Sequence record: NC_048077.1
Length of the DNA stretch: 64,000 nucleotides
Reading direction: 5' to 3' (one strand)
Shown: piece after piece, positions 15,713 to 49,651 of the stretch
Position numbering within the stretch: the first letter of the stretch is position 1
Layout of the letters: every line of letters begins with the position of its first letter
Notes under the pieces: model-generated
Databases searched by the model: none
What the model saw: the letters and a program-made list of their open reading frames with translations, nothing else
What the model was told of the DNA's origin: nothing
Made by a program: the position numbers and the translations under genes

Positions 15713-17491
15713 TTAGAAAATTTTACGCTTAACCAGAGAATAATAAACTTCGAACGGAGCACCATACAAAGCTGGCCCGCGTTGAGCACGCGCTGTCACT
15801 TTGCCTGTATGAATGTTCAACGCAGTGATTTCTACCGTTGGCTGTTTCGGTCGAATAGTTTCATACACCGGAGTGTTGAATGTCGGATAATCATTGCGTA
15901 AACGTTCGATACTTTCTTCCGCTTCTTTCGACGGCTGCGGGAATTTAAAACGAATCTCAGCAGCACGTTTACCGCGAGCGATAGTCACATAACCTTTCTT
16001 CAAAGGCACGCCGTTATACATCAGATAGGAAGAAATACGACGAGCGATACCGACCACCTGATCGTAAATCGTATCATCCATTACCTGCGCAGAAAAACGA
16101 ATGCCAGTAGGTTGCTGTACCATTGCCAGACGCAAACCAGTGTTGAAATAACCTTCGTCAATCAGGCGACGGAAATAATCATACATCGCTTCTGTTTTGG
16201 AGGCGATAGCCGGAATGTGCAACGGCGGAACGTCAGCTTTCGGTTCAACAAAAGTTGGAGTCTGAACCGGAATAGACATTTTCACAACCTGCGAAACTTT
16301 ATAAGTGTTTTCCAGAATCGGAGTTGTTTTGATCACAACTTTATTCTTGATTGCTTTCTTATAGTTTTCGTCAGTTGTCAGTGAGGTAAACAGACGATAA
16401 TCAACCGGGCTTGTATAGCCGCTAATGATATCGCGCACCAGCGTTTGAAGTTTTGCCTGCGTGTCAGCGAACACAACGCGACTGCGATTAGGCGTGCTCG
16501 GAGATACCGGGAAGAATGCACCGTAAACAGTTTTGATATTGCGCGGTGAACCTGTTCCAGTAACCTTAGTTGCGTTTTCCAGTTTCGGAAGTTTTTCAGC
16601 CTGACCAACAGGCGCAACTTTCGGTGTACTGCGAATCGCTTTACCTTTAACGTAACTCGTCGCTTCCGGATCAACAGACAGATTACTCAGCAGATTTTTA
16701 ACTGCCGAACTATCCATCCAACTCTCAATCGGAACTGCGAGGTTGTGTGCGAGGTAATGTTTCTTGCGGCGCATCAAAACAACAGTGCCTTTCGGAATAA
16801 CAGGCGACAGAATTTTTTTCTTCGTTGTTCCGATATACGCGAACGTATCAGTTTTCAGATCGGACACTTGACCGAATGGAGCGGTGAATTCAAGAGCGCC
16901 CATAATGCTTTGCGCTGTTTCGTGACCGCGAACAATAAACTGAATGCGCGGGCTATCTTTCAGACGCAGATCGTAACGGTCTTTGTTGAGATAGGTAATC
17001 TTAATCAGATCGCCTTTCTCAAGTTCTAGATCGTATTCATCGGAAGCGTCATCAATAGCCAGTTTCTTGCCCGTGTATTTGAGATACTTAGGTGCCGCAC
17101 TTTCAGAACTAACATCCAACACATCAAAAACACGTTGCGAATTTTCAGCGTACTCACGCGCCGCCTGCATTGCAGTGGCGAGGTTAAAGCTGATAGATTT
17201 TTCTTTCGGTGGAACTAACTGAACATGAACGCTACTACTCGCACTCATGAAAACAGTTTGATTATCGTCGCGAGTTCCAGCGAAGTGCATTCCAGTAAGG
17301 CGCTCTACAGCGTCAGCACTAATGCTTTCGTGTGCGATACGATCACCGGGAACAATCTCAGTGATTTCGCCACGGTGCCAAACATAGGCAGCGCGTCCAT
17401 TGTGACCAATAAAGTGATCGCCCACTTTAGAGATTGACCGTGGGATAATCCCTAAGTCAGAAATAACGCGAGAAGGTTTTTGAACAATCAT
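15713..17491 (-). CDS. Hypothetical head-associated protein (paralogous Y-x-x-Y-x-G domain; several S-x-S motifs)
   Basis: 592 aa; N-terminal region has SIS three times and SESA; the following domain aligns by eye with 30097..30765 and 47720..49651. Confidence 0.7.
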   Translation of the reverse strand: MIVQKPSRVISDLGIIPRSISKVGDHFIGHNGRAAYVWHRGEITEIVPGDRIAHESISADAVERLTGMHFAGTRDDNQTVFMSASSSVHVQLVPPKEKSISFNLATAMQAAREYAENSQRVFDVLDVSSESAAPKYLKYTGKKLAIDDASDEYDLELEKGDLIKITYLNKDRYDLRLKDSPRIQFIVRGHETAQSIMGALEFTAPFGQVSDLKTDTFAYIGTTKKKILSPVIPKGTVVLMRRKKHYLAHNLAVPIESWMDSSAVKNLLSNLSVDPEATSYVKGKAIRSTPKVAPVGQAEKLPKLENATKVTGTGSPRNIKTVYGAFFPVSPSTPNRSRVVFADTQAKLQTLVRDIISGYTSPVDYRLFTSLTTDENYKKAIKNKVVIKTTPILENTYKVSQVVKMSIPVQTPTFVEPKADVPPLHIPAIASKTEAMYDYFRRLIDEGYFNTGLRLAMVQQPTGIRFSAQVMDDTIYDQVVGIARRISSYLMYNGVPLKKGYVTIARGKRAAEIRFKFPQPSKEAEESIERLRNDYPTFNTPVYETIRPKQPTVEITALNIHTGKVTARAQRGPALYGAPFEVYYSLVKRKIF

Positions 17492-17500
17492 GACCTGTCC

Positions 17501-17941
17501 TTATAGGGAAATTTTTCGCATTGAGTGTTGTTGGAGAAGTCGAAGATTCCCAAACATCACATTGTATGCAGAGGTTCCATAAGTATGAATGAGTTGGCGA
17601 GGAACGAACGTGCCGAAATAAAGACAGTTAGGATCAAGTTGTGTGATTTCCGTTCCCACGTTTTTATCTACGTTGGAAACCACCCATACCCACGGCTCGG
17701 CAAAGAAACGATCATTGCGAGTGTGGATGCGAAAACCAATTGCCATTTCTCGACCGCGAGGATCAAACGAAAACAAATCAACCGTTCTTTGATTCAGCGC
17801 TTTCTGTACGGTGAACAATGCCATCGTGCGAAACTTTTCAGAGAACTGCGGAATGTGCGCGTTGTCCTTTTCAATCTGCAACAAGATTTTGTCTTGTTGC
17901 TCCTGCGTCAACTTTCCGAAATATTTTATTGCGAAAGGCAT
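17501..17941 (-). CDS. Hypothetical protein
   Basis: 146-aa ORF with GGAGA RBS overlapping the upstream stop. Confidence 0.7.
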   Translation of the reverse strand: MPFAIKYFGKLTQEQQDKILLQIEKDNAHIPQFSEKFRTMALFTVQKALNQRTVDLFSFDPRGREMAIGFRIHTRNDRFFAEPWVWVVSNVDKNVGTEITQLDPNCLYFGTFVPRQLIHTYGTSAYNVMFGNLRLLQQHSMRKISL

Positions 17942-18519
17942 TTCAGAATCTCCCCGACGATTTCCGTAGGAGTTGAATTATCGGTACTGAATACCGCATC
18001 GTAACCGCCCGGTAAATTGCGGTAACGATCTTGATACATTTCAAACGTTTCAGCATCGACCATACGAGCTTCGATATTGTCGCTACCTTCGCGTTTATCG
18101 CCACGACGAGAAACATAAGTTTCGTATGTGCAAGTAAGCAGAATGCTAACTACTTGAACATCCGGACGCAGAATATTAACGGTGCGATCAAACAGCACTT
18201 GCGTCTTATCGTCTTTAACTTGTAGCGCCCACGTTGAAGGCCAAGCACGATCAGTAATGACAACATCAGCAGAAGTTTCTGCAAGGAAATCCATCAGGGA
18301 ACTACGCGCCGCAAGGAAAATCAACATTTCCGTTAACGGCGAACGCGCATTGTTGTCGTGCAATGCAATGTTGCGCAGTTGTTCAGCGAGTGGGGTTGTG
18401 CCGGGTTCGCGAACACGAATAACGCTGATATCACGCAAACGCAGAGACGCCTCTAAAATTTCTGCGGTTGTGGATTTTCCCACACCTTCTGTTCCCTCAA
18501 GGACGATGTATTTTTTCAT
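17926..18519 (-). CDS. tmk: Thymidylate (dTMP) kinase
   Basis: MKKYIVLEGTEGVGKST P-loop, VREPG, VVITDR motifs. Confidence 0.9.
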   Translation of the reverse strand: MKKYIVLEGTEGVGKSTTAEILEASLRLRDISVIRVREPGTTPLAEQLRNIALHDNNARSPLTEMLIFLAARSSLMDFLAETSADVVITDRAWPSTWALQVKDDKTQVLFDRTVNILRPDVQVVSILLTCTYETYVSRRGDKREGSDNIEARMVDAETFEMYQDRYRNLPGGYDAVFSTDNSTPTEIVGEILKCLSQ

Positions 18520-18523
18520 TTGA

Positions 18524-19012
18524 TTACCTAAACTTGCCTCCACGCCATGCAGCATGGATTAGAAGACGGGAAAGGATTTTGTTTGATGTTTCGTGTGCTG
18601 TAGCATTCTTCTTAACTCTGGCATTGCCTAAAGAAGTTACAACAATAATCCCTGCGCCGCTGCCTTTAATGCGAGCAAGAATTTTCTCTCCGTGAGATTC
18701 AAACAAACGCTCAGAAATAACGAAATAAAACTTGTGGCAGTATTCAAAGTATTTGTGCCATTTCTTATCAGAAGAAAAATCAGCCCAACTACTTTTAACC
18801 TCAGAGATTACTACATGACATTTTGTGTTGAGTGACCAAACATCTGCACGTAGATTGCCGTATTTGTTCAAACCAAATTCAATGTGATTAGAATATCTCT
18901 TATCAATCCAGTAACCCACAACTGCTTCCGTTAAAAAGGCAGTTGTCTCGCCACGCGACAAACTTGTGAAAACAACTGCGGGTTTCCTGATTTTAATTCT
19001 TCTACGACGCAC
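18524..19012 (-). CDS. MmcB-like PD-(D/E)xK nuclease
   Basis: RADV...ISEVKSSWADF.SDKKWHKYFEYCHKFYF matches the MmcB family pattern. Confidence 0.8.
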   Translation of the reverse strand: MRRRRIKIRKPAVVFTSLSRGETTAFLTEAVVGYWIDKRYSNHIEFGLNKYGNLRADVWSLNTKCHVVISEVKSSWADFSSDKKWHKYFEYCHKFYFVISERLFESHGEKILARIKGSGAGIIVVTSLGNARVKKNATAHETSNKILSRLLIHAAWRGGKFR

Positions 19013-19454
19013 CTAATTCCAACTTCTTAATTGCCTGTTTAAGAACAGGTTTCCAATCACGATCAATTTTCTTGAGTGCGTCTTCGGCGAGGAACCAACG
19101 GCGCTCGCGTTGAGCAACTTCCAGATAGTTATCAAGTTCTTCATGCACCTGCATCAAAAACCATGTTACTTTCTGGAGTCTTCCGGTACTGCCTTTGACG
19201 TATTCCATTTTGGCAATTTTCTTACCGGGAACACCGCGCAGACCTGCTTCTTCCATTGCTTCTTTAATCGCGCTCGCTTCCAACGAAAGATCCGGCTCTT
19301 TACCGCCTTTTGGTAATCCCCAATTGTTCGCGTGCTTTGTGCGAATCATGCAGATTTCCAGATCACCTTCGTCGTTGTAGCGATAAGGAATAACGCCGCT
19401 CTGTTTACGAGGCTTGCGCCCGTCGCCTTCATCCAGCGTGAGAAAAACTTTCAT
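19002..19454 (-). CDS. Nudix hydrolase (DIPP/Ap6A-like subfamily)
   Basis: SGVIPYR, WGLPKGG, and Nudix box G-x5-E-x7-KEAMEEAG. Confidence 0.9.
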   Translation of the reverse strand: MKVFLTLDEGDGRKPRKQSGVIPYRYNDEGDLEICMIRTKHANNWGLPKGGKEPDLSLEASAIKEAMEEAGLRGVPGKKIAKMEYVKGSTGRLQKVTWFLMQVHEELDNYLEVAQRERRWFLAEDALKKIDRDWKPVLKQAIKKLELGAS

Positions 19455-19957
19455 AGATAATCGTTCGCTCTCGGTTTAGGTTCATCCCAATCCCAAGCAC
19501 GGTCTACCCAAAAACCTGCGTTGGAAAGTGAATCGACTGCGCTACGAATTGTTGAGCTTCCAACAACCACGTATTCAACAACCGTGTTACCGACATTATA
19601 CCCATACTTGTAGTTACCCAAGCAATAGGCAAACGACGACTGTTTTGGATCGAAAAGAATTTCTCCCGACTGACTCACGACGATTGCGCTGCACGGCGCA
19701 CCTTCCGGAACAGTAGAAAGAATTTCAATTCGAGCGAGCGGATTGCGGCGATAGCAACGCTGAACGAATTGAGCACAATCAGCGAACGAACGCGCAATAT
19801 TTGCAGCGCGGCTATCGTTGTATTGATATGCGTCTTCGATGATATTGCGTGCGCCAGTAAGATTAAAGCCAGCAGCGGCAATCATGATAGCCAGCGAAGA
19901 CGGTTCAATCTGCGAAGCAAAAGTGTTTGAACCAAACACTTCCGGAAACGTTTTCAT
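19451..19957 (-). CDS. Hypothetical protein
   Basis: Start refined to MKTFPE (GGGAGA RBS); TAATTT motif upstream. Confidence 0.7.
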   Translation of the reverse strand: MKTFPEVFGSNTFASQIEPSSLAIMIAAAGFNLTGARNIIEDAYQYNDSRAANIARSFADCAQFVQRCYRRNPLARIEILSTVPEGAPCSAIVVSQSGEILFDPKQSSFAYCLGNYKYGYNVGNTVVEYVVVGSSTIRSAVDSLSNAGFWVDRAWDWDEPKPRANDYL

Positions 19958-19983
19958 AAATATCTCCCAATGAATTGTCTTAC

Positions 19984-20881: not shown

Positions 20882-20893
20882 ATAGATATTTCC

Positions 20894-30096: not shown

Positions 30097-30765
30097 TTAT
30101 TTCTCCACGATGATCAAACATGGACGCATAGCGCCGTCAATTTTAATCATAGCCGCACCGACAATGTAACCACGCGGAATAACTTTCAGCACTGCATCTT
30201 CAAGCGCTTGTTCCCATTTGTCTTTCGGCTTGCCGTCAAAGGGAGTATAAGTATCCGTCGCATCATAGTAATTATAAGTTTCAGTTGTCGGCATCGGGAC
30301 GCCAGCAAGAAACTCTAAACGATTTGCGCCAGAAATTTTCGCTTTACGAATTGCTTCTGTCAGTTTTTTATTTTCTTTGCCGACAGAGTTATCCACTTCG
30401 TAGATACGTGCTTCCATCGGTGCATCTTTTGGCTTAGTAGGAAGTTTTTCTTGAGCCGTGGTATTTGCTTTCTTACCAGTGACTTTGATTCCCTTCACCT
30501 TGCCAGTAAACGGACGCGAACGACCTAACAGAGAGCGTGCAGTTTTAGCGTCAATCAGAAAAACAACATCGGGATCGTCACGATGCAGCACATAGATTTT
30601 ATTCTTAATGATGCACGTACCAAAAACATCTTTGGCTTCGATATCTGCCTCGAAATCTTTGTTCTCGATATAAACTTTTCGAGCACCTTCGAAACGATAC
30701 CAGTCACAATCTTCGATTTTGATTTTCGGTAAACGCGGAGCAGATACACTCACAAAAAACAGCAT
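30097..30765 (-). CDS. Hypothetical head-associated protein (SVSA motif, paralogous domain)
   Basis: MLFFVSVSA N-terminus, then WYRFEG...DVFG...DDPDVVFLID aligning with 47720..49651. Confidence 0.75.
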   Translation of the reverse strand: MLFFVSVSAPRLPKIKIEDCDWYRFEGARKVYIENKDFEADIEAKDVFGTCIIKNKIYVLHRDDPDVVFLIDAKTARSLLGRSRPFTGKVKGIKVTGKKANTTAQEKLPTKPKDAPMEARIYEVDNSVGKENKKLTEAIRKAKISGANRLEFLAGVPMPTTETYNYYDATDTYTPFDGKPKDKWEQALEDAVLKVIPRGYIVGAAMIKIDGAMRPCLIIVEK

Positions 30766-34160: not shown

Positions 34161-34634
34161 TTATTTAATGCGCAGACGCAGACCAGAGGAAGATGATTCA
34201 AACTCACCATCATCATTTGATTCTTCGTCATCGCCTTCGAATTCGAGATCATCGAGTTCGTCATCTTCAATCAGCAAATCATCTTCTTCGTCTTCCGGTT
34301 CATCTTCCGGATCGCCTAGTGAAAGGGATTCGAAATCGTCGCCATCATACAGAGATTGTTGTTTCGCCTTAGAAGTTGTCGTTACCAAAGCAGCAGAAAG
34401 CGCTTGCACGGAATCGGCAAGCGAAGAACTTGCGGCGCTGACTGATTCACAAGGATTTGCACACACATCAATTAGAGTGCTTGCTTCAACGCTATCAGAT
34501 AACTGACACGTTAAGAAATCTTCGCAATCAGGAGCGTGAGCAGCTTGTACCAAAATACGAGCTACATCTTCCCACTGGTTTTCGCGTGCCGCAACAATCG
34601 CAAGAGCAGCTAGGGAACCTGTCAACGTTTTCAT
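34161..34634 (-). CDS. Acidic head-associated protein
   Basis: Follows MCP; D/E-rich C-terminus; SVSA, SLS and SSS motifs. Confidence 0.75.
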   Translation of the reverse strand: MKTLTGSLAALAIVAARENQWEDVARILVQAAHAPDCEDFLTCQLSDSVEASTLIDVCANPCESVSAASSSLADSVQALSAALVTTTSKAKQQSLYDGDDFESLSLGDPEDEPEDEEDDLLIEDDELDDLEFEGDDEESNDDGEFESSSSGLRLRIK

Positions 34635-34655: not shown

Positions 34656-34718
34656 GGGAACACAATTTCTCATGTTCCCGACTTTAAAAAGTTTCTCACA
34701 ATTTCTCGCAAGAAACTT
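34656..34718 (-). promoter_or_regulatory. Twin stem-loops with identical GAGAAATT loops
   Basis: 11-nt direct repeat CACAATTTCTC at 34661-34671 and 34697-34707, each in the loop of a different stem. Confidence 0.55.
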
Positions 34719-34725
34719 TCTGCAA

Positions 34726-35820
34726 TTATGCGCGTTGTGCTTTAGCCACGGAGCGAACGTTAGCCAGCGTGAAGGAGAACACGCTAGACAGCAGCCAACC
34801 ACGATCAGTAGAACCCTGATTCGCGCCAGAAGTCGGCTGAGACTGAGTGCCGCCGCGAGTGGTGTACATCGCGTGGTAATCCTGATCAGCTACAACGTAC
34901 AGTTCGCCGTCATTCAGAACACGATGTTCCGGAGCGCGGAAACCATCAGTTACCAGATCCAGACCGAGCAGAGTTCCGAGACGACCAGTAGTGATCAGTT
35001 CGTACTTACTTACCGGATCGAGAGCAGAGGTAAACTGATCGTTACCGATAATGTCGTTCCAGTAATCGGCTGCCAGAATCGCAGTGCTTACCGGCATAGG
35101 CCACGCGCTTACTTGCTGTTTCAGAACAGACAGCAGGCGCGGAGTCAGTTCGCCGTGAATGTAAGTTACCGGGTTAGCCATACCGACAGAACGATCCGCC
35201 GCTTCTTTCCAGAGACGATCTTCTGCAACCATGATAGATTGCAGACCGTCTTGCTGCGCACGATCCAGCAGGTCGCCGTTGATCTGTTCCAGATCCATGC
35301 GAGAAACACGGATGATGGATTTCAGTTCAAACTCGTCCGGAGTGAACACACGACCGCGCAGTTGGCGATAACCGTATTCAGAAGGACCGGTTGCAATGAT
35401 TGCCTGGGCCTGGTGAGTTTTCAGTTCCACACGCGGAACGTCGCCCTGACGAACGGTTGCGCCTTTACAGATGCGACGCAGAAGACCTTGACGTTCAGCA
35501 CGGTCTTCGATTGCGCCAACGATACTTGCGCCGAGAGAATCCCACTTCGCCGGATCAGCAGCAGCTTCTTCGATCAGTTGACGGTTTTCTTCGCGAATCT
35601 GATCTTTGGTCATGCCAACGTGAGATTCAGAAACTTCCTGAATGTCGCCGTTTTGTGCGGCGTTCAGCAGTTGGCCGATACGACCGATAAGATCTTTCTT
35701 GCTGATCGCGTTCACTTCGCCAGTCGATTCAGACAGAATACGCTCACCGTTAATTTTCAGATCGTGCAACGGGTCGCCGTTACGCAGAACAACTTTAGCA
35801 CCACGCAGTTGATTTTTCAT
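34726..35820 (-). CDS. Major capsid protein (HK97 fold)
   Basis: 364 aa, strong codon bias, follows scaffold and decoration genes; HK97-like pattern (G.LGTLLGLDLVTD, GELYVVA). Confidence 0.85.
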   Translation of the reverse strand: MKNQLRGAKVVLRNGDPLHDLKINGERILSESTGEVNAISKKDLIGRIGQLLNAAQNGDIQEVSESHVGMTKDQIREENRQLIEEAAADPAKWDSLGASIVGAIEDRAERQGLLRRICKGATVRQGDVPRVELKTHQAQAIIATGPSEYGYRQLRGRVFTPDEFELKSIIRVSRMDLEQINGDLLDRAQQDGLQSIMVAEDRLWKEAADRSVGMANPVTYIHGELTPRLLSVLKQQVSAWPMPVSTAILAADYWNDIIGNDQFTSALDPVSKYELITTGRLGTLLGLDLVTDGFRAPEHRVLNDGELYVVADQDYHAMYTTRGGTQSQPTSGANQGSTDRGWLLSSVFSFTLANVRSVAKAQRA

Positions 35821-35872
35821 TTAATACTCCAGAAATTCTTTTTCAGTTTAAAGTTTTTTGCGAGGTGTGTTA

Positions 35873-36577
35873 TTACACGCCCGGCGTTGCCAGTTCGAAG
35901 GTTGCGTAACCGTTGGTTGCGTCCGGCGCTTTCTTGATGATAACACCTTTCAGCAGAGTACCGTTACCGCCGATAGTCAGCAGACCACCCGCGCCGAGAG
36001 ACGGATTCAGAACAGTGTCATTCTGCCAGTCAGCGGAAGCGTCGATCATGTTGGTAGAGATATTACCCAACTTGATATAGGAAACACGCTGGCGAATGTT
36101 GGTAGGCAGACCACCAACCGGAGCATCACCAGTGATTGCGCGAGCTTCGCTTACAGACAGTTCCCACGCGTACTGAATGTGAACTTTTTTGCCGATATCC
36201 GCAGAGTTGAATTTCAGTTCTGCGCCGTCGAAAGCAACTTCGCCCGCATCTGGAGCAGCGCCGCCAGTAACTTCATCAGCTTTGGTTTTTGCGATCTTAA
36301 CCAGAGTCTGACCAGCTTTCGGTTGACGTTGCAGAGTGTATGCCAGAGTTGCGTCGATGGTGAATTCTTCAACCATGATCTGATACGCAGGCGGCATGTT
36401 ACGTGCCATTGCGAAACCAGCGAAGATTTCACCCTGAACACCGCGAGACAGTTTCAGATAGTTTTTGCCGTTCTCACGATGCCAAACCAGAGCAACGCCT
36501 TCTTCGTGAATGACTTCACCCGGCAGCAGATCAGCTTCATTAGACATTACAATGTCAGTTGCGATTTGATACAACAT
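35873..36577 (-). CDS. Capsid decoration/cement-like protein
   Basis: Between scaffold and MCP; EGVALV...G..FAGFA pattern; start refined to MLYQ (GGAGA RBS). Confidence 0.65.
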   Translation of the reverse strand: MLYQIATDIVMSNEADLLPGEVIHEEGVALVWHRENGKNYLKLSRGVQGEIFAGFAMARNMPPAYQIMVEEFTIDATLAYTLQRQPKAGQTLVKIAKTKADEVTGGAAPDAGEVAFDGAELKFNSADIGKKVHIQYAWELSVSEARAITGDAPVGGLPTNIRQRVSYIKLGNISTNMIDASADWQNDTVLNPSLGAGGLLTIGGNGTLLKGVIIKKAPDATNGYATFELATPGV

Positions 36578-36646: not shown

Positions 36647-38605
36647 TTAACGCCCGAAACGACGGCGCAGAATGTCATCGAAAGATTCTTTAGAAGAACT
36701 TTGCGATTCGACGGTTTCCAAACTTTCTTCACGTTCTTCTTTAGAAACGCTAGGAACTTTCGGAGCTTCTTTCGTCTGACGTACAGTACCAGCGGTGCCA
36801 GCAACTGCTTCGGCGATTTCGTTCTGCGCAACTTCGGATTTAGCCATCAGTGCATCAGCCTGAGACAGAGAAGCACGCAGGAAATCTTCCGAGTTGTTAA
36901 AGAATGCACGCTCAACCAGAGGACGCGGATCTGCAATACCTGCATTACGCAGAGTAGCGCAAAGTGATTCAACAACAGGGTTGCTGGAATCGCGCCAGAA
37001 GTTGCGAGTGATGCCGAGCATCGAAGTGGACAGTGCCGCAACGAAACGCTCACGATGAGCTTCGACCATATCGCTAACAGTAGAGTTTACCGTAGAGGAA
37101 ACACTGTTAACGCGAGCGTCAGCTTCCGCAGTCAGCATTTTGCTAACAGACAGTTGCATAACAAAAGGTTCGAAACCAAAGTTTTTGCAGGTTTCTTCAA
37201 CGCCAGCGTTATGCAGAGATTTACTCACGGCGCGAATGAAATCTTCTTTATCGAAGACACGACGCGCAGAATCTTCGCCAGCGGCATTGCTAAAGCTACT
37301 GAAAGTAGCGCGTGCAATAGGTTGACCGTCATAGAACAGGTGAACCGCAGGAACACGACCGTTAACAGTGCGAGAGATAGAAACCAGCGACGGATCGAGA
37401 TTTTCATGTTCTGCTTTAACAGCAGACAGGCTATCGAAAGAGCGAACTTCCGCAGCGGTTTCGTCGTTGGCATTCAGATTACGAACAGAACTTTCGGATT
37501 CGAAATCTTCGTCTTCTTCATCGTCGAAATCGTCATCCTCATCTTCCTCTTCGTCGTCGTCGAATTCTTCATCATCGAATTCTTCTTCGTCGTCGAAGTC
37601 ATCTTCTTCGTCGTCATCATCGCCGGAGCAGGACGTTTTAGATTTGGATTCAGAGTCGAAATCTTCGTCGTCCTCTTCTTCCTCATCATCGAATTCTTCA
37701 TCATCGAATTCTTCGTCGTCCTCTTCTTCGTCTTCGTCGGAAGAAGATTCAGAATCAAACTCTTCGTCATCTTCCTCTTCTTCGTCTTCGTCGAAGCCTT
37801 CGTCGTCTTCCAGTTCCTCTTCTTCCAGAATATCAGAAGAATCATCGTCACTGCTTTCAGAAGCAATGTCGATCAGCGGTGCGGAACAGTGAGCGCAGAA
37901 AACGGTGTCATCATCGGTTGCGATGGTGAACGGAGCCGCGCAATTTGCAGAGCAAGAATATACGTGAGCTTCCAGTTTACCGTTCGAAGACAGCGCCTGA
38001 ATTTCTTCGCTTTCCAGAACTTTGGATTCGCTAATAGGCAGACAGCTATACGGATCGAAGTGAACGCCATCAGCGCAAGCAACAAAACTTGTTGCGGAGG
38101 ACAGAGCAGTAACTACGTCCTGTTTGCGAATCGCGTTAGCCAGATTCTGTTTTGCGTTTGCCAGCGTAGTACCCACGGCAACAACAGAAGAACGAGAAAC
38201 AGATTCTTTGTTTTCGTTTTCCATGTGGTCGAGAATACGATCATCAGAAACTTCTTCCAGACTTGCAGAGCAAGACGGGCAATGCGTAATATTCGCACTG
38301 CTATCGCTAACGATGTGGCAACCACAACCATCTAAACAGATGTGATATTGTGCTTTCACGTTAGCGGCAGAAGATTCGGATTGGAATTCGGCCTGCGCCA
38401 CCAACTCAGCGTCTTCTTCAAGCAGCTTAGTGCTGCCTTTCGGATCGAAAAGGTCAACGTTGCTTTGCGAAGCATATACGTCGCCGCTTTCAGAACGGTA
38501 GAACATGGAGTTCTGACCAGTTGCAGTTTTGCGGAAGTTTTCGACTGCTTGAGCGTGGCTGCCACCGACACTAACAATCCCCGCCAGACGGGTAGTTTTA
38601 GGCAT
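36647..38605 (-). CDS. Prohead scaffold/core protein with zinc ribbons and long acidic tract
   Basis: CxxC motifs (CPSC, CAHC), about 130-aa D/E tract, coiled-coil C-terminus; between protease and MCP. Confidence 0.7.
   Translation of the reverse strand: MPKTTRLAGIVSVGGSHAQAVENFRKTATGQNSMFYRSESGDVYASQSNVDLFDPKGSTKLLEEDAELVAQAEFQSESSAANVKAQYHICLDGCGCHIVSDSSANITHCPSCSASLEEVSDDRILDHMENENKESVSRSSVVAVGTTLANAKQNLANAIRKQDVVTALSSATSFVACADGVHFDPYSCLPISESKVLESEEIQALSSNGKLEAHVYSCSANCAAPFTIATDDDTVFCAHCSAPLIDIASESSDDDSSDILEEEELEDDEGFDEDEEEEDDEEFDSESSSDEDEEEDDEEFDDEEFDDEEEEDDEDFDSESKSKTSCSGDDDDEEDDFDDEEEFDDEEFDDDEEEDEDDDFDDEEDEDFESESSVRNLNANDETAAEVRSFDSLSAVKAEHENLDPSLVSISRTVNGRVPAVHLFYDGQPIARATFSSFSNAAGEDSARRVFDKEDFIRAVSKSLHNAGVEETCKNFGFEPFVMQLSVSKMLTAEADARVNSVSSTVNSTVSDMVEAHRERFVAALSTSMLGITRNFWRDSSNPVVESLCATLRNAGIADPRPLVERAFFNNSEDFLRASLSQADALMAKSEVAQNEIAEAVAGTAGTVRQTKEAPKVPSVSKEEREESLETVESQSSSKESFDDILRRRFGR
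37500..37860. repeat. Low-complexity acidic-codon repeat (TCATCATCGAATTCTTC-like units)
   Basis: Imperfect tandem units encoding EEFDD/DEEDDEE. Confidence 0.75.
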
Positions 38606-38688: not shown

Positions 38689-39792
38689 TTAAAGCGTCCG
38701 GCTTTCAATATCTTCATCCGGAATATAGCGGTTTACGAAGTATTTTTCGACTACCTCAATTCCGTTTAGTGCATAAACTTTTCGCAAACTATCTCCCCAA
38801 ACCATCAGTTCGGCAAGCGTAGCGAAATGTTCCATTGCCATCGTGTTTTTCCCGGCGGCAACGTTTCGTATTGGATGAATGTCTTTGCCTGCGATTGCCG
38901 CTTTGAATTTCATTCTATCCACATTTCGAAGTAAGGTTGTATCAATGAAATGCGCCAGTTCATGAGTAATAACATGAGCAACGCTTTTACTATTGAAACC
39001 GCCCAACAACTTAACGATTTGTTTCGGGTCGAGGATGATTACACCGTACTGAACGCCCTGATAACGAGTGTTCAAAATAAAGCATCCATCATCACTTAAA
39101 CCGAGTCCGATAAACAAACGTTTAAACGGCAACGGAACTTTTAATCCGATTGCTGGCATAACGTTGTCCTGAATATCTTGCATTACATAATCAGGGCAAG
39201 AGCGAGCGGATATACTGGAGCGCAAACCTGTTTTCAAATAATCCTCGTAGCTTTGAACTTCGAGTTTTACTTTGCCGCATTTCTCCAGTTTCTTCACTTC
39301 GTAGTTATTAATGCTGCCGCCACCGTAAACAGTGTTCGCGTATTTCAGCGGCTTTAACTGTTTATAGTTAACGTGGCCTTTTTCCTGAACCTCCTGCGCA
39401 CGTCGCGTATTTGCAACTTCTTCCGTTTCGTTAGAAACAGGTGCTGGAGCAGGAACAGCACTTTTATTCACCTGCGAAGGATAAGCTGTAGGTGCCGGAA
39501 TCGGCGCAGCAATTTCAGGCTTCGGAGTCTCCGAAACGTTCGCTTCTGGTATATCGAAATTAAAATTTTCAGGAAAAAGTTTCGAAGGATTTGCAGTAAA
39601 TTCACGAGAATCTTCGCGTACCTTATTTCCTATTTCAATGGATACCGGAACCACTTGTGATTGTTTTGGACTGGCAATATAAGCAACGCCATCACCAAAC
39701 GCAATGCCAACAACATCACGCGTAGTTATTTCCACTCCATTGGATCTCAGCGGTTCCCCGCCTAAATAACGATAGAAAGTAAAATCTCTCAT
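38689..39792 (-). CDS. Zinc metallopeptidase-like protein (HExxH)
   Basis: HVITHELAHFID plus downstream MEHFA third-ligand motif; Pro/Ala linker; N-terminal paralogous domain. Confidence 0.7.
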   Translation of the reverse strand: MRDFTFYRYLGGEPLRSNGVEITTRDVVGIAFGDGVAYIASPKQSQVVPVSIEIGNKVREDSREFTANPSKLFPENFNFDIPEANVSETPKPEIAAPIPAPTAYPSQVNKSAVPAPAPVSNETEEVANTRRAQEVQEKGHVNYKQLKPLKYANTVYGGGSINNYEVKKLEKCGKVKLEVQSYEDYLKTGLRSSISARSCPDYVMQDIQDNVMPAIGLKVPLPFKRLFIGLGLSDDGCFILNTRYQGVQYGVIILDPKQIVKLLGGFNSKSVAHVITHELAHFIDTTLLRNVDRMKFKAAIAGKDIHPIRNVAAGKNTMAMEHFATLAELMVWGDSLRKVYALNGIEVVEKYFVNRYIPDEDIESRTL

Positions 39793-40610
39793 CGGCGTTT
39801 AATCTGCATCAGTTGGTTGACTTCGGTTGCAGCACATGCGAATGCAGGATCATCAACAGAACTACATTCAAAACCAGTGAGCAACAAACAGTTACGATAT
39901 GCGAGACGGCCTGAACGCACATCAAGTTTCGTAGGCACATTGAATGCAGTATGTTCGCAGAAGTTACGAGTTTTAGGCGTAACCAAACGACCGCAAATAC
40001 TACACTCATACGCTTTGTAAGTTGTGCCTTTCGAATAGGTGTTCAGTTCACCCGAAAGAATACGGCGGCAACGTTCCGGTTCAAGCGTGCGGTCAAATGC
40101 CAGCAGCAAACTCAGAACAGCGTGATTACCACGGAAACCAACCAGCGGAGATAAATGACTATCAAAAATAATTCCGCGTGCTTTGGTGTAGTCTTTGTTC
40201 GCGTGTTCAATAAAAGTTGGTTTTCCTTTAAAAGTTTGGAACGCCAGCTTTCCTTGATCCGGGTTAAAGCGCAACCATTCTTCTTTCGAGAATCCATCGC
40301 CGTTGGTGTTCGGCAATTCAGTTACGTTAACCGGAACCGGAACAATGATATAATCGCGAATATCTTTCGACGTGTTATAAACTTCCGCAGCTTTCGGCAA
40401 CCACACATTGATATCCAGCATCAAATCACTGGATGCGCCAATGCGATTACCTGCAATGCGAATAGATTTATTATCGCGAGAGGCTTCTTCTTTATGAAGA
40501 TCGATTGGTGCCATTCCGGTGTGTTGCGTAGAACTCAGGTCGAAAGATTTACTTTCAACAGAATTGCTAATTGCCGCAACCGTTCCTTCATTTTTAAGTC
40601 GGATTGTCAT
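39789..40610 (-). CDS. Prohead maturation protease
   Basis: PNTNGDGF, FKGKPTFIEH, GIIFDS, G.ECSSVDDPA; upstream of scaffold/MCP. Confidence 0.8.
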   Translation of the reverse strand: MTIRLKNEGTVAAISNSVESKSFDLSSTQHTGMAPIDLHKEEASRDNKSIRIAGNRIGASSDLMLDINVWLPKAAEVYNTSKDIRDYIIVPVPVNVTELPNTNGDGFSKEEWLRFNPDQGKLAFQTFKGKPTFIEHANKDYTKARGIIFDSHLSPLVGFRGNHAVLSLLLAFDRTLEPERCRRILSGELNTYSKGTTYKAYECSICGRLVTPKTRNFCEHTAFNVPTKLDVRSGRLAYRNCLLLTGFECSSVDDPAFACAATEVNQLMQIKRR

Positions 40611-40616
40611 ATTGTT

Positions 40617-41039
40617 TTACCTGTAGTTCTTTTTGTTTTCGTCAGAATCAACGAGATAAACGCGTCCTTCCGGAGCAAGATATTTGTCGCCGTCGCAGTC
40701 TTCGAGAGCATAGAACAAACGACCGCCCTTCATAATCGCGTAAATGATTTTGGCATACAAAAAGTTTTCCGGATACTTATCGCCAAACCTGCGATACTCA
40801 ACTTCCAATCCGGGATACATTACATCAAAACTTTTCGTGCTATATACAGGACGAACAACACGGCTCGAATCAATATATTCGGTGCCGTTGCAGTGTTCGA
40901 TCATGTAACCTGCTTTATCCTTTCCAATAAGGATTCCTTTCACAACACCGCGAGAAGTGCCGCCGCAATTCCCTTGATCATTTTGCCATTTAAATTCGAC
41001 AATATCTTCGATGTTATAATCAAAACTAAATTGAGGCAT
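40617..41039 (-). CDS. Hypothetical protein (two SH3/KOW-like repeats)
   Basis: Two similar halves, each with a [IV]EDIV/GLEVEY start and an aromatic-acidic Y.IE/Y.LE..G..Y motif. Confidence 0.65.
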   Translation of the reverse strand: MPQFSFDYNIEDIVEFKWQNDQGNCGGTSRGVVKGILIGKDKAGYMIEHCNGTEYIDSSRVVRPVYSTKSFDVMYPGLEVEYRRFGDKYPENFLYAKIIYAIMKGGRLFYALEDCDGDKYLAPEGRVYLVDSDENKKNYR

Positions 41040-41043
41040 ACAA

Positions 41044-41991
41044 TTACCTTAACGCAGAACGCGCCCAAGTTTTTGCAAGTTCAAGAGAAAGGCGTTGCGG
41101 ATTATGGAGTTTAACTTCTCCGCTATGCACTGCCGTATACGGTTCGTTTTGATTTTCACCTTTACCGCTACGGAATGCAGCTTCATTGAATCCGTGGAAC
41201 AGCGTTGTAATCCAGCCGCTGCCTTTTGGATTCTGTTCGCCAAGTTTTTTATCCCAACGAATAACACCGCACGTTTCGCCACCAACACAAACCAGATAGC
41301 AAACTTTCTCGCCACCTGTATAAATGTCTTTTTGTTTATGCGTGCGGAAAGTTACACGGCTAGATTCAGAAACAACGTCGTCTTGTTTCTTGCGCAGATT
41401 GCCGGAAGTTTTCTGTTTCAGATCGTCGATATCCAACGTACTCCAATAGCTTTCAAACAGCGCCACCAGTTTGTTAGCGATAGGAATATCATCGAGCATG
41501 TTAATCTGCGCAATGGTGCTGGAAGGATCATCAATGATTCGATTCACAAAAAAGGAACCAACAACCACCGGAAGCACACTGCGTTGTGCTGGATTAGTTA
41601 CGCCAGCAGCATTGAGATAGTTATTGCTCAGGCCAATCGCGAGACGTGCCAAAACAATAAAAGTTTCTTTCTCAGTTGCGTTAGCGATAGTCGCCATCAA
41701 ACGAGCAGCAACAGCAGGATCGGCGGTACGTTGTGCCAAGCCTTCGATTTCGACTTTGGACAAAGACTTTCCGAGTTTCTTTTGTGCAGCAAGTTCGAAT
41801 GCGTTTTCGAGTTTAATTGAGTTTGCACGGTTCAAACTATTTTCGATTTTCTGTACAGTTTCTTCGGACGAAGAAAGAGAAATGCCCGTATTCCTACGGG
41901 CAACGTTATGGCGTCGTCTTACTTGCGGCATGATAACCTCATTGAGATTTCTGCAACTTTTCCAGTAATCCAGACGATTTGAGAGACTCAT
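41044..41991 (-). CDS. Hypothetical head-associated protein (SLSS and SESS motifs at domain boundaries)
   Basis: 315-aa ORF in the head module. Confidence 0.7.
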   Translation of the reverse strand: MSLSNRLDYWKSCRNLNEVIMPQVRRRHNVARRNTGISLSSSEETVQKIENSLNRANSIKLENAFELAAQKKLGKSLSKVEIEGLAQRTADPAVAARLMATIANATEKETFIVLARLAIGLSNNYLNAAGVTNPAQRSVLPVVVGSFFVNRIIDDPSSTIAQINMLDDIPIANKLVALFESYWSTLDIDDLKQKTSGNLRKKQDDVVSESSRVTFRTHKQKDIYTGGEKVCYLVCVGGETCGVIRWDKKLGEQNPKGSGWITTLFHGFNEAAFRSGKGENQNEPYTAVHSGEVKLHNPQRLSLELAKTWARSALR

Positions 41992-43039
41992 TCACATCAA
42001 GACCACGTACAGAACATAGTTGCGCATAATAATGAATCGCCTTATCCACCATGCCGAGAGATTCGCAGCACTGATAAGCTATATTCAAACACAGGTCTAA
42101 ATTACTTTGTGATGAGTCAAAAAGAAGAGGAGTTTGATTTTTTGCATTGATTCCTTGAAGCGCCAATGCGAGCGCATAAACATAGTCGCCATAGCGGAAC
42201 ATGATATCCGCAAACGTTCCATAGCTTTCAGAACGATCTGGACGAGCAGCAATTGCCATATTGCCTGCGCTGATTGCAGTGTGTCGATCACCAACCATGT
42301 AAGCGGCACAACTCAGTTCAACGTTAATCAGGCAAATGTAATCTTCCCAATATGCAAGTTTGTTAAGTCGGGCGATTTCAGAAACGGCTTCTTGATATGC
42401 CTGCTTATCAATATTTTTTGCAGTACATGAGTCCAAAACGCGATAGCAAAGTTCACGCGCATAATAAAACAAACTGCGCTCATCGCGAGGATTATCGGTA
42501 ACGTCTGCCGCCAGTTCGGGCAAATAGTTACGTGGCTTTTCCAAATCAGGATAATGCGTTGTGTGAAAGTCTGCATCCACAACCGATTCCGGAAGGTTGT
42601 CGATTTTTACTAAAACTTCATGCGCACGATATTTCCACGCATAACGTTTTTTCAAATAGGCTTTGTGTTGGAAATAAACACTGCCATTATTGTGCATATT
42701 GATGCGCACAGTATCCGGAACCGCAGGAAGAGACTTTAACGATTCAACCCAATCAGGATCGGAGAAACGTTCGTCGATATCCAACCACACAATTAAATCA
42801 TCGGGCTTAAAAGGCGCTGCCGCAAGGTTACGACTTTCGCCGAGATTTCTGCCGCCGTTCGGATCAATGTCATACGCGAAATGCAATTCCGGATGGTTGA
42901 ACCGTTCGATAAATCTAACTGTATTGTCGGTGCTGCCAGTGTCAACGATAGAAATTGCATCGGCTTTCGCAACATGGTTTAAAAATTCTTCCATGTTCTT
43001 TTCTTCGTTGCGACAGATCGCAGCTACGCACACACGCAT
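41939..43039 (-). CDS. Family-2 glycosyltransferase with C-terminal TPR repeats
   Basis: VAAICRNEE, IVDTGSTD, WLDIDE (DxD), YRAHE, LFYYAREL; TPR-like helices. Confidence 0.9.
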   Translation of the reverse strand: MRVCVAAICRNEEKNMEEFLNHVAKADAISIVDTGSTDNTVRFIERFNHPELHFAYDIDPNGGRNLGESRNLAAAPFKPDDLIVWLDIDERFSDPDWVESLKSLPAVPDTVRINMHNNGSVYFQHKAYLKKRYAWKYRAHEVLVKIDNLPESVVDADFHTTHYPDLEKPRNYLPELAADVTDNPRDERSLFYYARELCYRVLDSCTAKNIDKQAYQEAVSEIARLNKLAYWEDYICLINVELSCAAYMVGDRHTAISAGNMAIAARPDRSESYGTFADIMFRYGDYVYALALALQGINAKNQTPLLFDSSQSNLDLCLNIAYQCCESLGMVDKAIHYYAQLCSVRGLDVNESLKSSGLLEKLQKSQ

Positions 43040-43049
43040 AAGTGTTTCC

Positions 43050-45934: not shown

Positions 45935-45957
45935 GGAAATTCCCTCTGCAAATATCC

Positions 45958-46881
45958 TTAAACATTTACAGTTTCAGCGATGCGATTCGCAATAAAATCA
46001 GGAACCGCATTCATCGTAAGACCATTGCGTTTTGCCAACATGATAAAGGCTTCCGCATATTTCAATTGCTGACTCCCAACACCACCAAATTGACGAGCGT
46101 TGAGCAGGCGGCGCGACAATTCTGACACGACTGTTTGACGTGTACGGAAACCGGAGTTAATGCTTCGCAGCATTTGAAAATACTTGTGAACATCGGATTT
46201 GATAGAGAAAGTTTTGATGCCACTGAAATCTTTTCGAATAGCAGCATGGAGCAGAACTAAGAAAGGATATAAATCTTCTTTCTGTCTGGCTTCCTTTTCT
46301 TTTTCAATGTCCTTGATAAAATCAGGACGGTTATCAGGTTCCGGAGTTTCCTTGCCATTCAATGTGGAAGTGATTTCGTTAAAAAGCGAAATGCGTTTGG
46401 TCGGACGGCGTGACAGCATATCTTTCTTGCTGCCGTAAAAGTAAACCGGAATATTTCTTTTGCGAGCCTGCAAAGCAATGCCGCGAAAATACATCCCATT
46501 ACTTTTAATTCGCGCTTCTTCTTTCGTTCCAACGTTGCAGTGAATCTCTTTAACGATACTGATATCAATGTCCGGCTTGTCGCTGATAATGCGTTCTTCG
46601 GATTCAGAGTAATCAGCACCGTTCTGCCAGAAATCGACAGGCACAACTTTAAAGCGTGACCGGATTTTATTTGCATCCAAAACAAACAAAACTTCCGATC
46701 CGCCATTAGTTCTTATCGCGAAAATATTACTTAGCGTGCGGGTAGTGGAAAGGAAGAAGAGTCTGTTTTGAGAGAACTCTTCTTCCGCATCGCTTCCGGA
46801 GGCAATGCTCAAATGAAATTTTCCACTTCCCACAATACTCAGCGCGTTTTTCGGCGAAGTAAAGTGGAAGAGTGTATTCAT
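45958..46881 (-). CDS. ADP-ribosyltransferase-fold-like protein, paralog 2
   Basis: LFHFT..KNALSI..G, FLSTTR, ESEER motifs; paralog of the adjacent gene. Confidence 0.55.
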   Translation of the reverse strand: MNTLFHFTSPKNALSIVGSGKFHLSIASGSDAEEEFSQNRLFFLSTTRTLSNIFAIRTNGGSEVLFVLDANKIRSRFKVVPVDFWQNGADYSESEERIISDKPDIDISIVKEIHCNVGTKEEARIKSNGMYFRGIALQARKRNIPVYFYGSKKDMLSRRPTKRISLFNEITSTLNGKETPEPDNRPDFIKDIEKEKEARQKEDLYPFLVLLHAAIRKDFSGIKTFSIKSDVHKYFQMLRSINSGFRTRQTVVSELSRRLLNARQFGGVGSQQLKYAEAFIMLAKRNGLTMNAVPDFIANRIAETVNV

Positions 46882-47720
46882 ATATCTTTAATTGCCTCAT
46901 AAATAAAACGAGGAATACCCGCGATTGTAATGCCTTGCTGTTTCGCAAGAATCGCGAGAGCACGCGGAGTTTTCACACGCGAATCATCACTAGGATAATT
47001 GCGAGAGTTTCCGATATCATTACGCAGACCAGTTGCCAGTTCGTTGTAACGATATTGATCGCCGTAGCTTCCACGAATTTTATCGTAGATGTAAGCAACT
47101 TCACTATCACCCTGCTTTAAAAGTTTGGGGATAGTTTTATTGATCGCTGCGTGCATCAATTGAAGCCACGGCATCACGTAGTCTTTACGGCTACGCGGAA
47201 TATAACCGCCACGAATGATTTTAGATTTCGCCAGAATGCGCGGATCGTTCAGAGGCACACGGCGCTCTTTACGCATCGAGATCATATCTTTCTGGTTATT
47301 GTATGCGAACACGCTAATCTTTCGACGAGCGCACGCCAGCACCAGATCACGCAGATATTTTCCGTCATCGTTACGATCCAAGTTAATGTGAACCGCAATA
47401 ATAAACGGCGAAGCCGGAATACTAGGCTTGTCAGTAATCAAACGTTCCTCAGCTTCGGAATATTTGTGATTCGCCCAATAGTCCATCGGTTCAAGTTTGT
47501 AACGGGATTCAAGGGCGCGTCCATCCAGTTCAAACATTACGCCGTGTGCCTTATCAGCAAACGCATTGCTTCGTGTGCGAGTAAGAGAAAGATAAAACAA
47601 TTTTCCCTTATTGATAACCTCGTCAGATTCAGCAGCGTCAGCCATACTCAAAAAGAAACGGTTGTCAGTAACAATCTGCGCCGCTTTGTGAGTTTGAGTG
47701 AAGTGATATAAAGGTTTCAT
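46878..47720 (-). CDS. ADP-ribosyltransferase-fold-like protein, paralog 1
   Basis: LYHFT, YLSLTR, EAEER motifs. Confidence 0.55.
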   Translation of the reverse strand: MKPLYHFTQTHKAAQIVTDNRFFLSMADAAESDEVINKGKLFYLSLTRTRSNAFADKAHGVMFELDGRALESRYKLEPMDYWANHKYSEAEERLITDKPSIPASPFIIAVHINLDRNDDGKYLRDLVLACARRKISVFAYNNQKDMISMRKERRVPLNDPRILAKSKIIRGGYIPRSRKDYVMPWLQLMHAAINKTIPKLLKQGDSEVAYIYDKIRGSYGDQYRYNELATGLRNDIGNSRNYPSDDSRVKTPRALAILAKQQGITIAGIPRFIYEAIKDI

Positions 47721-49651
47721 CAGCTTACAATAGGTTCCTTGTTGACTTCAAACTCTTCTGACATATCGTACACGCGAGCGAATAGAGTTGGTTTCATATC
47801 CTTCACATGTTCTGCAATATCGAAAAGACTTTGTTTGCGGGCTTTATTGATTCGCACCTGACGAACTTCGTCCGGGCTATTAGTGATATCGTAAAGCGTG
47901 TAAACAATAATGCTGTCCGAAGATTTATGAGGCGCTTCGCGAAGAATTACCCATTCACGTTTGAGTTTTTCATCGGCTTTAAACACCACAATATCGCCTG
48001 CTTCCGGATTCGCCAATTTCTCTGGCGTGCCTTTATTTTCTGTAGCTTGTTTTTTAGCAAGTTCAGCGGCCTCCTGTTCAGCGTTGAGAACATCCTCATC
48101 GACTTCATCGGAATCAGTTTCATCAATATCAGCAGCGTCGTCTTCGGAATCCGCTTCTTCTTCATCCTCGGAATCTTCTTCATCCTCAGAATCAGTGTCT
48201 TCCTCAGAATCAGTGTCTTCCTCAGAATCAGTGTCTTCGTCCGGATCTTCTTCCTCTTCGTCATCCGTTTCTTCTTCTGAATCGGTATCATCCTCTTCAT
48301 CAGTGTCTTCGTCCGGATCTTCTTCCTCTTCGTCATCCGTTTCTTCGTCGTCCGTTTCCTCAGAATCGTCTTCTGATTCAGTATCATCCTCAGAATCTTC
48401 TTCCTCTTCCGGAGCAGGTTTCGCTACCTTAGATTTTTTCTTAACTTTCGATGGCGGCGCTTCTTCCTCTTCGTCTTCTGGTTCTTCTTCAACATCAGAC
48501 AAATCGAAATCACTTTCTACGGAATCAGAATCATCGCCGTCGCCAAACATGGAACCAATTACAGAATCAATTCCCATGTTGTCACTTGCGAATGGACGTG
48601 CAGAAAGAATATCTTCAAGCGGAGCAAACATATCGTCTTCCTCTGCCTGTTCTTCTTCAACTACATCCATATCCAGAACTTCGTCGAGATCTTCTTCGAG
48701 TTCTTCTTCTGCCAGAATAGATTTAATCTGGTTGCGCAGACGCACGGTAGGAATCGCATTCTCTTCCGTGTCAAACGTGCGAGGTTTAGCAGAAGGCGCT
48801 TCCATTTCACCACGTTTGATTTTCTCTTTCATTTCGTCGTAGCGCTCTTGTTCTGCGCGAGAATTTTCTTTTTGTGCGCGTTTGGCTTCACGGGCAGAAA
48901 TTTCTTTAGCAAGTTTTTCCGCACGCTGTTCAAGACGTGCAGCCTCACGCTGTTCAACCTGCGTGCGATGTTTCATTTTCTTGCTATCGGCGCGGTACGC
49001 TTTAACGTCTGCATCAGACAGCGTGCCATTAGGCCAATCCTGAATCGGCATAACGAGAGTTTCCGTAACCACTTTATCGTAGTTTTCCGGAGTGAGTTTT
49101 AAATACATCCCTTTCTCGTTAATAATAACGCCGCCTTTCGCATCGCGAATGTAGCGCATACCTATCATTTCGTTCTTTTTCAGAATCTCTTTGCCTTTAG
49201 TGTGCGTAACGGTCAAAGACATTTCCGGAACGATACGCCATTGATAGTTGCTAAAATCAATGCCGTTTTTATATTCGTTTGGAACAGTGCGCGGAGCAAA
49301 TCGAGCATTGTCGAAATTCTTACGCTGCAACTGACGTTCCGTAGTTTTAACGCCGCGTGCTTTTGCGCGTCCTTCGCGCTGAACAATATCAGGCAGCTTA
49401 CGCAATTTTGTTGCACGCTCTAACAACTGATTCCCGTTCTTCTTATCGAGCGGGAAATTGATATGAGGCATATCAGGAAAAATAAGAGTGAAACGAGATC
49501 CGCTTTTAAGAGACTTAACGCCAAAGATATCGCCCTCGCGAATCATGCGTTTGTGAGTACGTTCCGAAACTTCTTTGCCGCGTTGCCCTGTATACTTAAA
49601 CCAGTTGTATTCGCTAACCGCTTCGTCATATGTAGCCGACTGAGAGAGCAT
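47720..49651 (-). CDS. Head-associated protein with paralogous N-terminal domain and ~200-aa acidic disordered tract
   Basis: MLSQSA start; WFKYTG domain; D/E tract; C-terminal SH3-like segment. Confidence 0.8.
   Translation of the reverse strand: MLSQSATYDEAVSEYNWFKYTGQRGKEVSERTHKRMIREGDIFGVKSLKSGSRFTLIFPDMPHINFPLDKKNGNQLLERATKLRKLPDIVQREGRAKARGVKTTERQLQRKNFDNARFAPRTVPNEYKNGIDFSNYQWRIVPEMSLTVTHTKGKEILKKNEMIGMRYIRDAKGGVIINEKGMYLKLTPENYDKVVTETLVMPIQDWPNGTLSDADVKAYRADSKKMKHRTQVEQREAARLEQRAEKLAKEISAREAKRAQKENSRAEQERYDEMKEKIKRGEMEAPSAKPRTFDTEENAIPTVRLRNQIKSILAEEELEEDLDEVLDMDVVEEEQAEEDDMFAPLEDILSARPFASDNMGIDSVIGSMFGDGDDSDSVESDFDLSDVEEEPEDEEEEAPPSKVKKKSKVAKPAPEEEEDSEDDTESEDDSEETDDEETDDEEEEDPDEDTDEEDDTDSEEETDDEEEEDPDEDTDSEEDTDSEEDTDSEDEEDSEDEEEADSEDDAADIDETDSDEVDEDVLNAEQEAAELAKKQATENKGTPEKLANPEAGDIVVFKADEKLKREWVILREAPHKSSDSIIVYTLYDITNSPDEVRQVRINKARKQSLFDIAEHVKDMKPTLFARVYDMSEEFEVNKEPIVS
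48184..48346. repeat. Tandem 18-bp repeat x3 plus ~46-bp duplication
   Basis: CCTCAGAATCAGTGTCTT at 48184, 48202 and 48220; CAGTGTCTTCGTCCGGATCTTCTTCCTCTTCGTCATCCGTTTCTTC at ~48229 and 48301. Confidence 0.85.

Follow-up and report, generated by a model that had tools for sequence, protein, structure and literature searches.

What does the recurrent peptide Ser-x-Ser (S-x-S) do in the head genes of a Dickeya jumbo phage? The DNA analysed, hereafter the window, is a 64,000-nucleotide stretch of sequence record NC_048077.1; it is the head–tail module of phage JA33/JA11 (vB_DsoM_JA33/JA11, 255 kb, Salmondvirus; bases 62001-126000, identity 100%), and its minus strand holds nearly all of its genes. 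To our knowledge, the gp21-type prohead proteases mapped so far (T4, phiKZ, 201phi2-1 and SPN3US) all cut after Glu. An earlier note on this DNA had proposed that S-x-S-(A/S) is an undescribed code of the prohead protease with Ser at P1, the residue ahead of the cut, and that it flags packaged proteins. The observation behind that proposal is confirmed: the motif excess is genuine, holds up statistically and is head-specific. As its explanation we favour, at a probability of about 0.7 and from sequence comparison, that Phi-x-S-x-S-(S/A), with Phi a hydrophobic residue, would be the recognition and cleavage signal of a prohead serine protease with the gp21 fold, and would also flag cargo. We found no description of an S-x-S motif in the literature searched, as the earlier note had supposed. 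PaBG, Lu11, Y3, Yoloswag, Alexandra, AD1 and the JA phages form one group (PMC7412058, PMC6143709), and a cleavage motif is reported in neither of these two papers.

Genes were taken from codon-scored calls and RefSeq coordinates, and expected motif counts from within-protein shuffles that keep composition. The pattern S[EIVLQ]S[AS] occurred 44 times in 288 predicted proteins (17.7 expected) and 7 times in the scaffold-like protein described below (0.75 expected). In an unbiased scan of tripeptides and gapped pairs, SxS was among the strongest non-acidic motifs of that protein (28 versus 11.2, z 6.2), and it likewise ranked among the top non-acidic motifs in the scaffold homologues of Yen9-02, Yoloswag, Alexandra and AD1. 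When 37 orthologous groups from the window were aligned against four relatives, 32 fully or nearly conserved Ser pairs stood at i,i+2, versus 10-13 at spacings 1 and 3-6; pairs of Thr, Ala, Gly, Asp or Glu had no peak at spacing 2 in these groups, and SxS had the top observed/expected ratio (3.35) among 121 residue pairs. Genome-wide alignment of the complete genomes of JA33, Yoloswag, Alexandra and Y3 (134 orthogroups, from which the scaffold dropped out) gave 37 conserved Ser pairs at spacing 2 versus 20-28 elsewhere. SxSA was conserved across all four genomes 7 times against 0.34 expected (~20-fold), with x variable in 6 of the 7, an excess among the highest of 3314 a-x-b-c patterns and comparable with that of a collagen-like GxTG repeat. 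G-x-T-G was itself the most frequent conserved pattern of this kind in the four-genome alignments (19 versus 1.2 expected), in Thr-rich collagen-like repeats.

At orthologous sites the middle residue varied freely (E, Q, K, S, T, H, V or L), which argues against Glu as the recognised residue. A logo built from 19 conserved sites had a hydrophobic residue at position -2 (F, V, I, L or A; information content 1.3 bits), Ser at 0 and +2 flanking an unrestricted +1 (E in 30%), S/A at +3 and A/S at +4.

Counts per protein class, which the earlier note had named as a check, separated head proteins from the rest, with classes taken from annotation only:

Head proteins (portal, major capsid protein (MCP), decoration protein and protease): 2.6 conserved variable-x SxS per 1000 amino acids (aa); raw pattern, with the scaffold added, 10 versus 1.1 expected (P 3.5e-7)
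Tail proteins: 0.33 conserved variable-x SxS per 1000 aa (15 proteins); raw pattern 4 versus 2.3 expected (18 proteins)
Other proteins: 0.39 conserved variable-x SxS per 1000 aa (115 proteins); raw pattern 13 versus 12.3 expected (248 proteins)

The head excess of conserved variable-x sites had a Poisson P of 0.003 (2e-8 with the scaffold). By these counts the entire genomic excess of the raw pattern falls in head proteins and the candidate cargo set, with tail and other proteins at background, and the impression that the motif is not concentrated in tail or baseplate genes was borne out.

Within the window, the scaffold-like protein, the MCP and their sites are as follows:

36647..38605, minus strand: scaffold-like acidic protein, 652 aa, with 28 S-x-S, 13 of them conserved across the clade
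38369-38386, 37850-37867, 37742-37759, 37487-37504 and 36695-36712, minus strand: examples of its S-x-S bracketing acidic blocks
34726..35820, minus strand: MCP, 364 aa, phrog_2522; AlphaFold2 model with a mean predicted local distance difference test score (pLDDT) of 81
35722..35739, minus strand: MCP site 1, L-S30-x-S32-T, within the putative propeptide; kept in 14/14, x = E, Q, S or K
35617..35634, minus strand: MCP site 2, S65-E-S67, the predicted maturation cut; kept in 14/14, x = E, T, H, V, Q, G or S

The 36647-38605 gene lies between the protease and MCP genes, and with its acidic blocks and 13 conserved sites its product looks like a scaffold or core protein. It bears the label 'ATPase' in RefSeq and PHROG, which is corrected here: Pfam gave neither an ATPase domain nor any other. 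Besides its long acidic blocks, the protein contains a pair of Cys-rich segments that resemble zinc ribbons, and its C-terminal part is helical and conserved; its PaBG homologue is not among the 14 Coomassie-stained virion bands of that phage (PMC7412058). The peptides that the earlier note quoted were all present at the genes it named, including those around the acidic blocks of the scaffold (FQSESS, IASESS, FDSESS, FESESS and VESQSS) and two in the MCP (ILSEST at residues 28-33 and VSESH at residues 64-68); FDSESK is a further scaffold peptide of this kind.

In the MCP model, residues 70-364 match HK97-fold capsid proteins (Z 13-16), and site 2 sits just ahead of that fold, in a lower-confidence linker between a strand (60-64) and a helix (72-88). 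A cut there would remove ~67 residues (18%), in line with the ~20% mass loss of the MCP in PaBG, several of whose virion proteins are processed (PMC7412058). The boundary carries no conserved Glu in the 14 clade members. The portal (genome 5296-7239, phrog_16240) has Phi-x-S-x-S-(S/A) at residues ~53 and ~539, at both edges of its conserved core.

The enzyme that would read these sites is also encoded in the window:

39789..40610, minus strand: prohead protease, 273 aa, T4 gp21/assemblin fold; phrog_18299 at 1.7e-113, 'head maturation protease'
40539..40559, minus strand: predicted self-processing site S20-x-S22 (residues 18-24); kept in 14/14, x = K, E, H or Q

Its AlphaFold2 model (pLDDT 83.6) matched T4 gp21 (5jbl) with Z 9.5 (root-mean-square deviation 3.0 Å, 140 of 165 residues), clearly ahead of the next matches; herpes proteases gave Z 5.5-6, and the Foldseek probability of a shared gp21 fold was 0.91. 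No Pfam family, Peptidase_S77 and S78 included, matched the protease even at E up to 10, which leaves PHROG 18299 as its sole profile match, and a sequence search of the PDB for it returned nothing useful. Across 42 diverse homologues H136, S193 and E248 never vary; the His and Ser are the predicted catalytic residues. The S20-x-S22 site lies in a disordered N-terminus ahead of the fold (residues 1-22, pLDDT <50). After the strand of the catalytic Ser there is a zinc-ribbon insert (Cys-x-x-Cys ... Cys-x-His, residues 200-222, with C203, C206, C218 and H220), which is conserved in the 42 sequences and which T4 gp21 lacks.

The motif changes with the protease subtype. From 79 related head modules in IMG/VR, 39 non-redundant ones were compared, grouped here by the signature of the protease:

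TYSKGTTY (13 modules): scaffold SxS at z 4.8-6.6, no TAS
TYS[ML]GM (11 modules): scaffold TAS/ATA at z 3-10, SxS flat
TYSMGAL, phiRSL1/Sauron type (~14 modules): scaffold without either motif

The MCP boundary bears the motif matched to its clade (for example, I-A-T-A-S in HRDY3), and sister-clade sites at equivalent places, such as those of the portal, read A-T-A followed by S, G or A. For the phiRSL1/Sauron clade, comparison of scaffolds and MCPs yielded no clear motif. Among scaffolds of the SxS clade, AxE and [LI]xE were not consistently enriched, and SxE was depleted (z -1 to -3.2). An apparent excess of S-x-S-[AS] in HRDY3 proved to be an artefact of a spurious antisense open reading frame (ORF) over its scaffold and MCP genes. 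The HRDY3 scaffold gene is split into two ORFs, the second of which begins M-A-T-A-S. In one metagenomic relative (L094:5751-8411, IMGVR_UViG_3300002026_000062), the protease gene is an ORF of 886 aa in which a large intein-like insert, opening with Cys and closing with H-N-C, immediately precedes the catalytic His motif; the neighbouring scaffold is rich in S-x-S-[SA].

The same peptide recurs at extreme N-termini. Of the 13 proteome-wide matches to [FILVM]{2}-S-x-S-[AK], 8 fall in the first 11 residues of a protein (a ninth joins them once a start is corrected), where 0.30 would be expected. This N-terminal tag has the form M-x-Phi-Phi-Phi-S-x-S-A/K and spans 8-9 residues, with L, I or V as the usual middle residue; its carriers are mostly unrelated to one another. 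It is kept in orthologues at 27-57% identity, a few of which have S-L-A instead. The Ser codons of the tags mix AGY and TCN, which points to selection on the peptide and not on the DNA. None of the 442 proteins of HRDY3, whose protease is of another subtype, bears such a tag. Two of the tags lie in the window, on proteins with a KMPT-N domain (PF20294):

49634..49651, minus strand: N-terminal tag of gene 47720-49651 (643 aa, KMPT-N at residues 15-79); S-x-S-A kept, x = Q, V, L or E
30739..30765, minus strand: N-terminal tag of 9 residues of gene 30097-30765 (222 aa, KMPT-N at residues 20-83); kept in 5/5, x = V, E, A or T

Elsewhere in the proteome, a 1944-aa SNF2-type helicase is tagged. PaBG has a matching ORF of ~1,970 aa, and PaBG virions include a 221-kDa helicase-like protein, gp202 (PMC7412058), to which that ORF comes close by size and annotation only. 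A tagged 225-aa protein outside the window (G000 165091-165801, minus strand) contains an ART-PolyVal ADP-ribosyltransferase domain (E 2.4e-27) and would correspond to T4 Alt, a packaged protein that gp21 clips (PMC9026906); no homologue was present in Yoloswag, Alexandra or Y3.

Taken together, these sites suggest a processing scheme. The scaffold-like core protein would be cut at more than ten sites, the MCP would shed its ~67 N-terminal residues, the portal would be cut at both ends and the protease would trim its own N-terminus. The N-terminal tag on ~10 proteins would probably bring cargo into the prohead and then be clipped, like the T4 capsid targeting sequence. We infer from sequence comparison that cutting occurs at all, and that the tag also targets its carriers to the prohead.

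Granted such cutting, the better candidate for the scissile bond, and a fairly probable one, is that following the second Ser, which would place small residues at P3 and P1. It is favoured because P3 and P1 are what defines the known gp21-type motifs (PMC5694885, PMC9026906), because the last Ser is the invariant position and the persistent proteins always have Ala or Lys next, and because sister-clade sites read A-T-A before S, G or A. The less favoured alternative, cleavage following the first Ser, would put Phi at P3, as T4 does. The A-T-A sites further suggest that P3 and P1 need only be small, and that P1 is not strictly Ser; on this point the code proposed in the earlier note would need amending, while conservation, head bias, clade co-variation and the lack of Glu enrichment all speak for its core.

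Several known systems offer parallels. T4 shares the protease fold, a scaffold cut many times, protease self-trimming, an MCP propeptide of ~65 residues and short N-terminal leaders on unrelated internal proteins, including an ADP-ribosyltransferase. It differs in its L/I-x-E motif, with Glu where JA33 has Ser, and in its 10-residue capsid targeting sequence (IPIII, Alt), which ends I-A-E, whereas the JA33 tag is a hydrophobic stretch plus S-x-S; moreover, the JA33 protease lacks a Pfam S77 match. The proteases of the jumbo phages phiKZ (gp175) and SPN3US (gp245; MEROPS S80, S/A/G-x-E and A-x-E) resemble the proposed enzyme in a small P3 and any P2, and process the portal and many ejection proteins, as proposed for JA33, but have Glu at P1 at every mapped site, whereas JA33 has no enriched or conserved Glu motif. 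Herpesvirus assemblin, which belongs to the same fold superfamily, cuts (V/L/I)-x-A↓S, with small residues around the scissile bond, and the sister-clade Phi-A-T-A-S closely resembles this consensus; assemblin is, however, a eukaryotic-virus enzyme of distant sequence with Ala at P1 and Ser at P1', and in JA33 the last Ser follows a variable residue. Bacterial signal peptidase I (the -3,-1 rule, A-x-A↓) likewise selects small residues after a short hydrophobic stretch, but the JA33 tags are much shorter than any signal peptide, many sites lie inside head proteins of the cytoplasm, and the enzyme is unrelated.

That a lineage with the gp21 fold (Salmondvirus, Alexandravirus, Yoloswagvirus and relatives, with ~60 records of Erwinia, Dickeya and Yersinia jumbo phages in GenBank) replaced Glu at P1 by a herpesvirus-like small-residue rule (Ser/Ala), with the tag as a portable load-and-clip signal, we consider an even bet. 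If so, a T4-type enzyme would have acquired a new specificity; specificity within the fold would be evolvable, and the gap to herpesvirus assemblin would narrow. From sequence alone, the motif would allow the head-internal and probably injected proteins of these biocontrol phages to be listed (candidates being the Alt-like ADP-ribosyltransferase, the giant helicase and the KMPT-N proteins), the ejected proteome could be read from the genome, and foreign proteins might be packaged with the candidate tag.

Several observations weigh against cleavage as the function of the motif. The literature on Y3, Lu11, PaBG, Yoloswag, fHe-Yen9-02 and phiRSL1 yielded no mature N-termini or mass-spectrometry data. 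The co-variation with protease clade amounts to only two or three evolutionary events. SKGTTY as the determinant of specificity is weakened by the metagenomic L094 module, which has TVSIG yet an SxS-rich scaffold, so something other than the residues beside the catalytic Ser must contribute. Several conserved sites keep an invariant middle residue and may be structural. Single conserved variable-x sites also occur in a 1507-aa 'tail protein' (7289) and a virion structural protein (2795), and another in the unnamed gene 21676 of the baseplate gene block. They are among the points on which the reading of the earlier note is only partly supported; in its favour, the proteins that the motif heads are mostly unrelated and plausibly packaged.

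The strongest rival, itself unlikely, is that S-x-S serves in binding or targeting alone, as a contact peptide for scaffold, portal or shell that draws proteins into the prohead, with the protease cutting at other, unrecognised sites. The N-terminal tag does behave like a targeting peptide, and in the T4 capsid targeting sequence the residues for targeting and for processing differ (PMC9026906). Binding alone, however, leaves aside that the motif also stands at the fold boundary of the MCP, where a cut is expected, and at more than ten places in a scaffold that must be removed, and that it changes with the protease clade while enrichment was seen for no further candidate motif, with or without Glu.

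We give much less weight to S-x-S as a modification sequon, for O-glycosylation by the product of the adjoining GT2 glycosyltransferase gene (41939-43039) or for Ser phosphorylation. Both Ser residues offer a hydroxyl, and the glycosyltransferase gene is in the head module of all relatives; but sister clades keep it and use A-T-A followed by S, G or A, so the last Ser is dispensable there. Some tag orthologues have S-L-A, and propeptide boundaries and extreme N-termini are typical of processing rather than of glycan display.

It is highly improbable that the classical Glu specificity was kept, with S-E-S cut after Glu (x-S-E↓S) and every other S-x-S incidental. E is the commonest middle residue (30%), and cleavage after Glu is the rule for every gp21-type enzyme characterised (PMC5694885, PMC9026906), but middle residues vary between orthologues, the tags mostly have L, I or V there, and the scaffolds are depleted of SxE and not consistently enriched in AxE or [LI]xE. 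Finally, a functionless by-product of Ser-rich, low-complexity composition and shared ancestry is disfavoured and just as improbable: the scaffold is repetitive, with 13% Ser, and over the whole proteome the excess of SxS is slight (z 2.7, falling to 1.6 once the scaffold is left out), but the shuffles preserve composition, spacing 2 alone is enriched, AGY and TCN codons are both used, the tag is common to unrelated proteins, and the related phage HRDY3 is without it.

Further sites in the window are these:

17093..17113, minus strand: internal S-x-S-A, residues 129-132 of gene 15713-17491, directly ahead of KMPT-N (135-194)
17234-17251, minus strand: second conserved site in gene 15713-17491
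34434..34451, minus strand: S-V-S site, residue 64 of a small acidic protein (34161-34634) beside the MCP gene; kept in 14/14
41362..41382, minus strand: S-[EL]-S site, residue 186 of head-module gene 41044-41931; kept in 11/14
38689..39792, minus strand: two KMPT-N domains and a peptidase-like C-terminus; N-S-x-S at residue 268 conserved, SSISAR (39205-39222) not

The remaining cases cited in the earlier note, at the N-termini of the genes at 47720, 30097 and 43964 and inside those at 15713, 41044, 34161 and 38689, were all present, but two or three of them are chance occurrences: the ligase N-terminus and SSISAR in the 38689 gene are unconserved in relatives and fell away as true sites.

The four KMPT-N proteins (15713-17491, 30097-30765, 38689-39792 and 47720-49651, one of them with two copies) hold the only clear copies of this domain in the genome, and the set of four is also found in Yoloswag, Alexandra, AD1 and Y3. 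In three of the four, a conserved S-x-S-A lies 3-11 residues upstream of KMPT-N.

Long antisense ORFs (319-421 aa) at 34672-35937 and 40155-41114 on the plus strand face the MCP gene and the protease and 40617 genes, respectively, and are artefacts. Gene calling by length is misled by such ORFs, and likewise in HRDY3, where the antisense ORF is of 1050 aa.

Outside the window, the tagged ART-PolyVal gene lies in a cluster of three small tagged genes (164654, 165091 and 165889). A run of four adjacent tagged genes (G000 153704-159405, minus strand) encodes proteins of 654, 595, 189 and 330 aa, none with a known domain and the first two paralogous over their first 230 residues; these four are candidate head-internal proteins.

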